Shown here in pieces: positions 32,583-35,500 of a stretch of 64,000 nt of DNA. How positions within the stretch are numbered: the first letter of the stretch is position 1; each line of letters opens with the position of its first letter. The notes under the pieces were generated by a model. That model saw only the letters and a program-made list of their open reading frames with translations, had not been told where the DNA came from and did not search any database. The stretch comes from Saccostrea cucullata. Taxonomy: Eukaryota. Both the position numbers and the translations under genes were made by a program. Location of the stretch: contig NW_026926125.1 of assembly GCF_032062105.1 (NCBI RefSeq), positions 124,001 through 188,000 of the forward strand, in the 5' to 3' direction.

Positions 32583-35500
32583 TCAGTAATATTTTCCTGT
32601 TTCCCAACTTAGTTCTCTGGTGGTTGTAGCTCCGATTTCTGAAAGATAGGCTCTGAATTTTATATCATATTCCTTTTTCTTTTCAGGCATTCTAAGATAG
32701 TGAAACATTTCTCTGACCATGCCGGAGATGTTTGGAAATTCCTCACACTGTTTCTCTATGTCGCTCATATAATTCCTCAAAGGATATATGCGCAACTCTA
32801 ATTCTGAAACAAATAATAGGTGTATGTAGTAGTGATTTAGTTTCTCCTTTAGAACTCGAGTCTGTAAAATAATTTCTCCTTTCAATGTTTCATCTTCAAT
32901 GGTATTCACTTCAAAGGGATGTTGTTCGATTGCATGTTTCAAACAGCGTATGGCTGATTCGACAGCAGGTAAACTTAACGTGACATTCCTTTTGTCATAC
33001 TCTGTAAGACTGTATTCATAAAGAAATTTTGCTATAGACGTATAATCTACAGCTTTGTCCATTGGGATTGGTAACCAACTAATTGAATCATCTACACTCC
33101 AGGGTATGAGGTTTTCTAGTAGTAAAACACCCTCTGGTTTATATTTAGCCGCCAGATTTCCTCCAAATTCTCGGTCAAACTCTTTTGCAACTATGATTCG
33201 AGATGAACGTTGGTTAATTTGATTGATTGAACCTTCAATAAATTCTAAAAGGTTAGGAGTATTCTCTCCTGAATCTGGTAAAAGAAGCAAATGTTCATAT
33301 GTGTCTCCTAAAACTTGGGATACTGATTTATAAAGTCCCATCCTCGAGAGAATCTTTGCGGTGCGTAAGGATGTTGAAATCAACGTATTTTCGACGGTGG
33401 CCCTTAAATTCATTGTTTGCACAAACGTTGGAATGTCTGAAAGAACTTTTCTGACCAAGTTTGCTCCATACATATATCCATGTTTTTCAGCAACGAACTG
33501 GATTATGTGTGCCGGAAAAAATCGGATGGACTCAATGGAGATACACAGAACATCAATGTCTTCCTCTAACAAGCAGTCAATTAGGTTTTTGGTTGGAATG
33601 AAGTAATGAGGCAGAAACCTAGCTTTTAAGCAGGATATCAGTTTACTGATGACATACAGTACGCAACCACTGAAGGAAGTGTCCCAAGCGCTGGGTGGCA
33701 TTTCCTCACATGAACGTAAAAAGACTGCTGTCAAGTGCTTTAATTTTAGAGAATGACTGAGATGAAATGTCGTATTTTCGAGTAACACTTTCAGGATAAA
33801 ATATCCATACTGCTGTGTCTCTGTAAGGTTTTCAATGATAATGAACTTTGCCATGGAGAAATTGTATTTCCATTCTATCGTAGGATTTTTACTTTTTGGG
33901 TGAGGTTTGGGGATTAACGTGCAACCTGTCTGCAAAATACGGTAAATGAGATCAGGCGACGGAAAATCGAAGTTCCTTTTTCTCTCCCTCCACTCACAAG
34001 TCATCGAAGGAAATGAGCAAAGAATACCTATATACTGTATATCTGTTTGACAGAAATAGGGACGGGACTGAAGACTATGGGGGATGTCGTATGCCTGTAA
34101 ATAAGCATTTGATCCAATTTGCAAAACATTTTCCTCTGCGCATGTTGCTTGACTTTTTGGAAGTTTAAGTCTGCAGTAGCCAGGGTGGGTATCTGAGGTC
34201 TCTTCACTCATAATATGTGATGACAAATGTTGGAACGCTGGAACTGCAAATGGGATTGATCTGTCTGCTCTGATAACAACAGCTTTTGGCTTCTTTCTAT
34301 GGTTTTTATTGTAGAAGTGTTGCATTTTTTGCGATCTTGTTATGTCTTTTAATGTGAAATAACATGGATTACAACAATGACCTCTAAAATGATATAATGC
34401 CTCCGGATCATCCCTATTAAAGAGTAGTCGTCCATCTGCTGTACTGTAGGTAATTTTTAGTGTTTTAGACAGGAGAGTTTTCATTATAAACGATAAATGT
34501 ATTATTGGTATTCCCGTGAGAGGATCGATATGCATATTGTCCCATGTTAGACTTTGGATTGACTCTGTGGAAAGATACACATTTATTAAATTTGAAAAGT
34601 ATAAATAGTATATATTTTAAGCAAAAGACGATCGATGTAAAATTTATTGCAGAGAATCCTATTTCAAAGTGAATCAGTTAAACAAATAACTTTATTAATA
34701 GTATTTAACCTTCAGTTTCCTCTAACTGTAGATCAACTGGACTGTATGATCGAGAGGTGCTTTTGCTGCAGTTATTCATTTTCTCATCCATTTTTTCTTC
34801 TACAGTTTCTTTTTCATGTATGCTTTGTAATGCAAAATCAGTTATATCTTTCAGTGTGGTTTTGAGTATGTATCTTTCATCTTCCATACTTTTAGCCTTT
34901 TCTTTTATAAGATGTTCCTTTATCTTGGGATCCAAATCTTTTGAACAAGCTAGAATCCTTAGTATCAACGCTTCTGAAATGGAAATCATGATAATATTTA
35001 AAATATTTTGTAAAATCAAATAAGCAATTGTGTTATGAATAACAGTACACTGCTAGGTATATTACTAAAAGGCCAGTGCTTTTGCCAAAGTTTTGGACGC
35101 AAACTCAAATAATGGAACTCTCCAAGGTGACCAAGAAATATTGTCAATCGATTTTGATCATATTTGTTAATTTTTCCTTTGACTTCAGTCCGGTATATGT
35201 CGTCATCATAGACGTTGAAGACGATGACTTCAAGGAATAGCATATCAGCGACAGCCTGTAAAATGATGTGGTCGCTCCATTCACCGGACCTCGACATTCT
35301 TGTTAAATATTCCGACCATGTTTCTTCTAATAAAAAGGAAGAGGGGTGACTTTTGTCTTCTTGGAAAGGACACTGTCTCAAATATCTAGGAAATTAAGTA
35401 AGAAAAAAAATTGTGCTTGACGTTCTGAAATTTGTTTCCATAGAAAATGTGTACATGTATTTCTTAATAAATAATAATTAAAAAAAAAAAAAATAAACTA

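Follow-up and report, generated by a model that had tools for sequence, protein, structure and literature searches.

The window analyzed here, 64,000 nucleotides (nt) of AT-rich eukaryotic DNA (GC ~0.34) from the oyster Saccostrea cucullata, contains four paralogous genes, which we refer to as copies A (32.6-36.3 kb, minus strand), B (37.6-42.4 kb, plus strand), C (45.5-50.1 kb, plus strand) and D (57.8-63.3 kb, minus strand). Guided by annotated homologues, we delineated in each gene an acidic N-terminal exon, two OTU exons, a short linker exon and one large exon of ~2 kb, which encode, in this order, an acidic N-terminus, an OTU deubiquitinase (DUB), a domain of the Mab21/cGAS fold and a TPR-like helical tail. 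We present evidence that the Mab21 domain is a pseudo-nucleotidyltransferase, which has kept the fold of cGAS-like receptors (cGLRs) and lost the catalytic triad of a nucleotidyltransferase (NTase), and we argue that it probably serves the fused OTU domain as a non-catalytic binding module. The annotated proteins nearest to those of the window are from oysters. The exons of copy B are 98.6-99% identical to the S. cucullata protein P0011, and the large exon of copy C is 82% identical to an S. echinata protein and ~50% identical to two Ostrea edulis proteins. Searches were run with single exons, one by one, or with annotated database proteins in place of joined gene models. The large exons of A and D each encode 650 amino acids without interruption. 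The features of the genes are as follows (ORF, open reading frame; pLDDT, predicted local distance difference test).

33700..34450, minus strand: copy A, NTase core (N-lobe) and start of the helical lobe (ORF 32583-34580; AlphaFold model)
33447..34547, minus strand: copy A, whole Mab21/cGLR-fold domain, 367 amino acids as modelled (Pfam Mab-21_C E 2.6e-12; model)
32586..33446, minus strand: copy A, acidic, helical (TPR-like) C-terminal domain, sharing its exon with Mab21 (helical equivalent in the copy C model)
35066..35385, minus strand: copy A, OTU exon 2 with GEFHY at 35109-35123 (Pfam OTU 29.1 bits; splice joints)
35641..35861, minus strand: copy A, OTU exon 1 with DGNC at 35724-35735 (Pfam OTU; joint at 35641)
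35941..36306, minus strand: copy A, acidic N-terminal exon with D-Y-F-D-S-E-D-E-Y (ORF; tblastn of the Ostrea edulis homologue P0002)
40603..42389, plus strand: copy B, large exon (Mab21 and helical tail), frame broken (two overlapping ORFs; DNA alignment with C)
48202..50067, plus strand: copy C, large exon (ORF; model pLDDT 94.4)
47222..47583, plus strand: copy C, OTU exon 2, frameshifted (alignment relative to B)
57756..59690, minus strand: copy D, large exon (ORF)
62095..62825, minus strand: copy D, OTU exons with DGNC at 62688-62699 and GEFHY at 62137-62151 (motif and Pfam OTU)

AlphaFold models built on alignments of 83-84 relatives were obtained for the Mab21 domain of copy A (pLDDT 92.9, predicted template modelling (pTM) score 0.91) and for the whole large exon of copy C (pLDDT 94.4, pTM 0.90). 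The best structural match of these models was MB21D2 (Z 23.4 for A, 23.6 for C); human cGAS was matched at Z 22.5, Sp-cGLR1 at 22.3-23.4, Cv-cGLR1 at 21.7, MAB21L1 at 20-22, a Tribolium cGLR at 19.8, MiD49 at 16.5 and bacterial CD-NTases at 11-13. The structural alignments to MB21D2, cGAS, Sp-cGLR1, Cv-cGLR1 and MAB21L1 span 280-300 residues, with Foldseek E-values of 1e-11 to 1e-8, and in VIA-align residues 5-358 of model A correspond to MB21D2 28-420 (Z 23.4) and residues 18-351 to human cGAS 161-521 (Z 22.5). The models thus predict a complete cGAS/Mab21 fold. Pfam recognized the helical half only, with PF20266 (Mab-21_C) scoring 47.2 bits in A, 53.6 in C and 59.2 in D at a cut-off of 24.1. 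PF03281 (Mab-21), which represents the NTase half, reached 18.5 bits in C, under its cut-off, and had no match in A and D up to E = 1. Because sequence searches of Pfam and the PDB fail to reach the N-lobe, profiles aligning to solved structures only from the strand of the third Asp onward, our mapping of N-lobe residues rests on relatives found by profile search. Several structural motifs are near-invariant in the family (THPGY, EW..R.RK..WPS, IEWK.NFS and LPHYFIP).

The C-terminal ~290 residues of the large exon are all-helical, with pLDDT >90 over residues 338-617 of copy C. Residues 465-622 of copy C match TPR proteins at Z 9.5-11.4, a weak signal in a range common for helical repeats. The tail had no Pfam match, and a comparison with protein clusters yielded only leads of low score (0.83), to clusters from molluscs. 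Mab21 domains and tails differ in charge: the former are basic (pI 8.8-9.05, net charge ~+10), the latter acidic (pI 5.1-5.4).

To map the catalytic positions, we searched 1.8 billion representative proteins with a profile and obtained 3369 matches, 183 of them below 1e-30; 11 of the 80 relatives that cover the domain carry the canonical GS, S-D-x-D-h-h-h and h-D-x-V...C-x-x-W-P motifs (h, hydrophobic). These triad-complete relatives have the same long loop of ~24 residues between GS and DxD as the window proteins. The corresponding positions in the four copies are listed below.

34374-34385, minus strand: copy A, RGHC, with G56-H57 at 34377..34382; GS position, Ser replaced by His
34275-34295, minus strand: copy A, KKPKAVV, with K86-P87-K88 at 34284..34292; [DE]h[DE] position, no acidic residue
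34026-34046, minus strand: copy A, TDIQYIG, with D169-I170 at 34038..34043; third column is I170
33738..33740, minus strand: copy A, K270; column of the donor-base stacking Tyr, aligned to K-S-Y-H of Sp-cGLR1
59514-59525, minus strand: copy D, IGPL; G-P at the GS position
59415-59435, minus strand: copy D, KKPRIVI; K-P-R at the DxD site
59175-59195, minus strand: copy D, YEVQYIG; V at the third Asp column
48352-48363, plus strand: copy C, LGSF; GS kept, 48355-48360
48427-48447, plus strand: copy C, KKDATVV, with D78-A79-T80 at 48433-48441; DxD site
48628-48648, plus strand: copy C, SERCYMG; R145 at the third Asp column
40681-40692, plus strand: copy B, IGSF; GS kept
40756-40776, plus strand: copy B, KKDATVI; DxD site
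40957-40977, plus strand: copy B, TERCLAG; R at the third column

An hhalign comparison of the oyster family with the 11 triad-complete relatives (probability 100%, E 2.5e-78) placed S-D-Y-D of the relatives on K85-K86-P87-K88 of copy A, both Asp residues falling on K86 and K88. The GS Ser fell on H57 and the third Asp on I170, with D169 pairing with the preceding hydrophobic residue. MAFFT agreed with hhalign in placing KKDATV and KKP[KR] at the DxD strand, and DSSP places the beta2 strand at KAVVIR in the model of A and at ATVVALRP in that of C. By hhalign and the column table, the three metal-binding columns read K/K/I in A, K/R/V in D and D/T/R in both B and C. The third column, which lies four residues before an invariant family Gly, was anchored in hidden Markov model (HMM) alignments on S-V-D-L-T-L-G of Sp-cGLR1 and on Q169 of MAB21L1, the equivalent of hcGAS D319 (PMC4897736). 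A and D have also lost the GS Ser, which is His in A, where the Gly is kept, and Pro in D, whereas B and C keep GS. In copy A, in addition, the conserved Glu that follows F-S-x-A is replaced by Lys.

A first-pass annotation of this stretch, made from the sequence alone, had called the cGLR domains pseudo-nucleotidyltransferases. All peptide strings that it quoted were found in the window sequence, those of copy A inside 33700-34450, and its placement of the KKDATV and KKP[KR] strings at the DxD strand and its division of the copies by GS agree with our alignments. The pseudo-nucleotidyltransferase assignment itself is borne out by the fold match at Z 22-24 and by the lack of a full triad in every copy. 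At the third site, its strings ([DE][IV]QYIG and ERC) are present and the Asp is lost as it had proposed, but the [DE] it aligned there lies one residue N-terminal of the catalytic column. Competent cGLRs are described by the motif h[QT]GS-X8-20-[DE]h[DE]h-X50-90-h[DE]h (PMC9980059). A, B, C and D all lack this active-site motif, and their spacing from GS to the strand is ~24-28 residues. Both lobes are present and AlphaFold predicts homology to cGLRs and CD-NTases, the other points on which that study judged its candidates.

Two acidic positions close to the site were considered as remnants of the triad and rejected. The enlarged beta1-beta2 loop carries an L-[KR]-D-I-[ST] motif in all four copies: L66-T70 (LKDIT) of A at 34338-34352 (minus strand), and 40714-40728 (plus strand) in B, 48385-48399 (plus strand) in C and 59478-59492 (minus strand) in D. 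It lies 11-13 residues after GS, which is the canonical spacing of DxD. However, the triad-complete relatives share the long loop, and their S-D-x-D aligns with KKDATV/KKPKA in both MAFFT and hhalign, in agreement with the DSSP beta2 strand. The Asp of LKDIT occurs in 27/28 sequences of the oyster subclade, in 40/69 of the clade described below and in 2/15 of the triad-complete outgroup, and we regard it as a putatively derived, clade-specific conserved site beside the dead active site. The [DE] of [DE][IV]QYIG and ERC was rejected as a retained third carboxylate, as MAFFT, hhalign and two alignments of HMMs to PDB sequences agree in putting it one residue ahead of the catalytic column. On a beta strand, a shift by one residue turns the side chain to the opposite face.

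To place the loss of the triad in the family, we examined relatives beyond the window. Pfam scans of 14 long relatives found OTU together with Mab-21_C in 13, the exception, P0065, being triad-complete, and 37 of 163 fetched proteins matched a local OTU profile. The alignment includes 36 OTU-linked sequences, and the full triad is absent from every one. In a maximum-likelihood tree, which took in only matches to the family's own profile and left out MAB21L and MiD sequences, a branch with a Shimodaira-Hasegawa-like approximate likelihood-ratio test (SH-aLRT) value of 91 splits 69 sequences from 15. The 69-sequence clade holds all OTU-linked sequences, together with fragments that lack the N-terminus, and has the full triad in 0/69, compared with 11/15 in the sister group. 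The full-triad state is strongly clustered on this tree: it requires 3 changes, the mean after shuffling is 10.5, and 0/500 shuffles gave a value as low. At the three catalytic columns, acidic residues occur in 16/69, 3/69 and 6/69 sequences of the clade, and in 12/15, 13/15 and 11/15 of the sister group; because these counts differ so between the two groups, the pattern of loss is beyond chance. Ranked by variability within the clade, the catalytic columns fall at the 67th-87th percentile, the acidic position next to the third column at the 94th and the Gly of GS at the 3rd.

Changes also affect other positions that would contact the nucleotide. At the column of the donor-base stacking Tyr (hcGAS Y436, MAB21L1 Y272; PMC4897736), 12/15 outgroup sequences have Tyr, whereas the clade has Lys in 28/69 and Tyr in 7/69. 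In W-R-x-S-F-S, the Ser is present in 15/15 of the outgroup but is not one of the four commonest residues of its column in the clade, where the Arg has mostly given way to Gln or Lys. At the GS position the clade has retained Gly in 67/69 and Ser in 42/69, and the Gly of THPG is nearly invariant.

The full triad is missing from every OTU-linked relative examined, whether from oysters, pearl oysters, scallops or mussels, and a supported branch sets all of them apart from the sister group; the loss is thus old, ancestral and clade-wide. This revises one element of the first-pass annotation, which had described two subtypes degenerated differently: the residues do differ between A/D and B/C, but the loss is ancestral across bivalves and not a recent local decay, and the differences look like drift at sites freed by the ancestral loss. 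D-x-T at the DxD site recurs on several deep branches and may therefore be the ancestral lesion. Named members of the family come from Saccostrea, Ostrea, Pinctada, Pecten, Argopecten and Mytilus, all with OTU and Mab-21_C, and as far as the sampled sequences reach the OTU-Mab21 family appears old and confined to pteriomorph bivalves.

We next turned to the OTU domain. DGNC (with the Cys) and GEFHY (with the His) are present in A, B, C and D, in line with the first-pass annotation, which had the OTU Cys and His retained in every copy; in C, however, a frameshift lies between the two motifs. Searched exon by exon, PF02338 (OTU) scored 18.1-20.9 bits on exon 1 of all four copies and 29.1 (A) and 32.7 bits (D) on exon 2, while exon 2 of B and C had no match to it in this single-exon search. 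The full-length homologue P0008 scored 46.7 bits. The nearest solved sequences are OTUD5 and nairovirus vOTU (E ~1e-5).

Per-domain ratios of nonsynonymous to synonymous substitution rates (dN/dS, Nei-Gojobori method, NG86), a check already proposed at the first pass, were estimated between the copies. Between A and D they were 0.31 for the N-lobe, 0.14 for the helical C-lobe, 0.27 for the tail and 0.13 for OTU, and between B and C 0.22-0.30 for Mab21 and tail and 0.04 for OTU; dS is 0.8-1.5, near saturation, which makes the values rough, though all are well below 1. This result shows that the Mab21 and tail domains are under purifying selection and that OTU is the most constrained domain (0.04-0.13 against 0.14-0.31). 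Because the most constrained domain is the fused OTU, the DUB is the likely enzymatic output of the fusion protein.

In this assembly, two copies carry lesions. Compared with B, OTU exon 2 of copy C has a +2-nt frameshift near 47306-47310, which falls after the Cys exon and ahead of the His motif. The Mab21 domain of copy B has, relative to C, a 1-nt deletion near 41199 that shifts the frame, and a 9-nt deletion at ~41268 that removes K-H-T including a nearly invariant His; the NCBI protein for copy B, P0011, terminates at the stop derived from the frameshift. For gene A, contigs of run X1 contain the minus-strand GT..AG joints 34973|35066 and 35385|35641, which shows that an A-like mRNA is spliced as modelled. 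The splicing was seen only in contigs of this run, whose RNA nature is presumed from the index, and these contigs are silent on expression level and induction.

Several further observations concern the surroundings of the genes. A stretch of ~30 nt between A and B (36879-36909) attracts many RNA reads, at very high depth in X1, and these reads run on at both ends into unrelated sequence; the stretch probably matches a fragment of some abundant repeat or transcript that originates elsewhere and is not a site of local transcription. The N-terminal exons of A (35941-36306, minus strand), B (37592-38563, plus strand) and C (45525-46289, plus strand) share the motif D-Y-F-D-S-E-D-E-Y-[FW]-E, which homologues from Ostrea and other Saccostrea carry as D-Y-F-D-S-[DE]-[DE]-E-Y-[FM]-E-T, the exons being otherwise poorly conserved. 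The region had no Pfam match, and a docking function of the motif is possible. A fragment at 45131-45235 (minus strand), a short way upstream of copy C, resembles the very C-terminal end of A/D-type proteins (46% identity to residues 1030-1064 of P0008) and seems to be what is left of a lost gene that stood head-to-head with C. The window is 124001-188000 of contig C8262, and the family continues beyond it at 198000-219000 of the contig, with two intact-looking large exons (205409-206431, plus strand; 217738-218826, minus strand) and, near 198 kb, a degraded copy. Genome-wide, the family profile has roughly twenty further near-full-length matches and some degraded ones, with clusters also on contigs C2941, C12415 and C9716. 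Away from the four genes, a PIF/Harbinger-type transposon lies at 18930-19964 (plus strand) and 20710-21165 (minus strand), one of its ORFs with DDE_Tnp_4 (E 2.5e-33) and the neighbouring one with a Myb/SANT-like DNA-binding domain (E 8e-20).

Among known systems, competent cGLRs (cGAS; Sp-cGLR1, 8GJY; Cv-cGLR1, 8GJW; Tc-cGLR, 7LT2) share the two-lobed fold (Z 19.8-23.4) and the motifs of the helical lobe, but the oyster domains lack their GS-[DE]h[DE]-[DE] site and their contact Tyr, Ser and Arg and have OTU and a helical tail added. Large cGLR expansions have been described in bivalves in a census that counted intact active-site motifs only (PMC9980059), and we did not find OTU in the main text and the supplementary files searched of that study. 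Fusions of cGLRs to TPR or ankyrin have already been noted. MAB21L1/MAB21L2 (5EOG/5EOM) and MB21D2 (7LT1) resemble the oyster domains in having the Mab21 fold without demonstrated NTase activity. For MAB21L1, no such activity was detected and the third triad residue is altered (Q169) (PMC4897736), in the very column that is I, V or R in the oyster copies. MAB21L1 nevertheless keeps two of the three carboxylates and the donor-base Tyr (PMC4897736), whereas copy A keeps none of them. MAB21L1/2 and MB21D2 are furthermore single-domain products of slowly evolving developmental genes, without an OTU or TPR-like part, while the oyster proteins are multi-domain and their genes tandemly duplicated and fast evolving.

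Reuse of a pseudo-NTase as an adaptor is known from MiD49/MiD51 (4WOY), which act in mitochondrial fission, with ADP as a cofactor of MiD51 (cited in PMC4897736). These proteins match the oyster domains much more weakly than cGLRs do, are membrane-anchored, have no DUB and belong to an unrelated biology. The shrimp proteins LvMab21-1/2/3 are a further precedent for non-catalytic Mab21 proteins; these invertebrate Mab21 proteins of antiviral immunity have no OTU fusion and activate IKK-epsilon by direct protein binding, without binding nucleic acid or synthesizing cGAMP (PMC12928593). On the other side of the fusion, OTUD5 (3PFY/3TMO) and nairovirus vOTU (3PHW and others) have the Pfam OTU domain with the Cys/His motifs of the oyster OTU but, unlike the oyster proteins, no Mab21 domain. 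A Mab21 fold with an incomplete triad, as in the non-catalytic proteins of the MAB21L1/2 and MiD49/51 type, is thus what the oyster copies present. A literature search found no paper on an OTU-cGLR/Mab21 fusion or on this clade, which is weak evidence of novelty given the incomplete coverage of the literature. Non-catalytic Mab21 proteins as such are already known; on this weak evidence, the OTU fusion clade is apparently undescribed.

Based on these findings, the reading we favor, and consider probable, is that a pseudo-NTase Mab21 domain has been fused to OTU and acts as a non-catalytic binding module for the DUB. Its first part, the pseudoenzyme status of the Mab21 domain, is well supported by the alignments: the predicted fold is intact, with the metal-binding triad and several nucleotide-contact residues gone. 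OTU would then be the only catalytic center of the protein, and the basic Mab21 domain together with the helical tail would bind a ligand or a partner protein and thereby target or regulate the deubiquitinase, probably in innate-immune signalling. The analysis shows the fold, the clade-wide loss of catalytic residues, purifying selection, the OTU motifs and spliced transcripts of an A-like copy; we infer from these the lack of NTase activity, the DUB activity, what is bound, how the domains are coupled and a role in immunity.

Several observations weigh against this reading. The residue equivalences come from sequence and profile alignment without superposition. The residue just ahead of the third column is acidic in A, C and D (and in 15/69 of the clade), the conserved LKDIT Asp sits in the loop adjoining the active site, and B and C retain one of the three carboxylates (D78 in C). 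The dN/dS values suffer from the near-saturated dS, two of the four copies (B and C) are frameshifted in this assembly, and the RNA depth over gene A is ~1-2 with reads 95-99% identical, which makes another allele or a paralogue a possible source. The acidic residues could be taken to mean that the domain is still an NTase with a rebuilt site, in which D169 of A, E144 of C and E167 of D, the LKDIT Asp and D78 (B and C) bind metal and a nucleotide signal is made. The clade-specific conservation of the LKDIT Asp would fit, and the authors of the MAB21L1 structure left residual activity with an altered third residue possible (PMC4897736). Yet the neighboring acidic position is the highly variable one noted above (E, K, T, H, A or R) and would face the other way on its strand, the DxD strand of A and D has no carboxylate at all, and the contact Tyr and the W-R-x-S Ser and Arg are lost too. 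Mutation of the motif abolished synthesis in the four cGLRs in which it was tested (PMC9980059), and we consider a rebuilt NTase very improbable.

We judge it scarcely more probable that the Mab21 part is a decaying, functionless relic on an OTU gene, or that whole genes are becoming pseudogenes. The frameshifts in B and C, the degraded copies elsewhere on the same contig, the very low RNA depth and the N-lobe being the least constrained part in the A-D comparison would all be expected from decay. It is difficult to reconcile with the uninterrupted exons of A and D, with dN/dS well below 1, with models of pLDDT >92 from a diverse alignment, and with an architecture kept in at least six bivalve genera in which structural motifs are nearly invariant. 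A more serious alternative, possible although we would not bet on it, is a passive scaffold or oligomerization module without ligand sensing, in which OTU is constitutively active and is positioned by protein-protein contacts that the Mab21 domain and the TPR-like tail make. Tails of this kind mediate protein interactions, the shrimp Mab21 proteins bind IKK-epsilon without nucleic acid, and the fold of MiD49, which has no enzymatic role, matches the oyster domain; but the basic charge of the Mab21 domain fits binding of nucleic acid or nucleotide equally well, and MAB21L1 binds CTP/ATP on its platform side (PMC4897736). The first-pass annotation had proposed a sensing or scaffold module, with the catalytic output moved to the DUB. 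Sensing is a reasonable inference, the only hints bearing on it being the basic Mab21 domain (pI ~9) and purifying selection. Its strongest form, a ligand-gated deubiquitinase in which the dead cGLR binds pathogen nucleic acid or a (cyclic) nucleotide and switches on or re-targets OTU, seems to us unlikely, more so than the passive scaffold and less so than decay or a rebuilt NTase.

cGAS-like receptors are defined by making nucleotide signals. The proteins described here, taken as a pseudo-NTase fused to a DUB, suggest that bivalves of several orders maintain, under purifying selection, a large sister family in which the receptor fold is catalytically dead and fused to a deubiquitinase and a helical interaction domain. 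Counts of oyster cGLRs that rely on motifs miss such genes because the active-site motif has been lost. Should a ligand-gated DUB prove true, it would be a direct pathway from receptor to ubiquitin editing, invented in pteriomorph bivalves and diversified by tandem duplication. If the fold still recognizes a ligand, the family would represent a natural re-wiring of a pattern-recognition fold from second-messenger synthesis to ubiquitin editing, and even as a mere scaffold it would provide a clear and datable case of pseudoenzyme evolution in the Mab21 superfamily.

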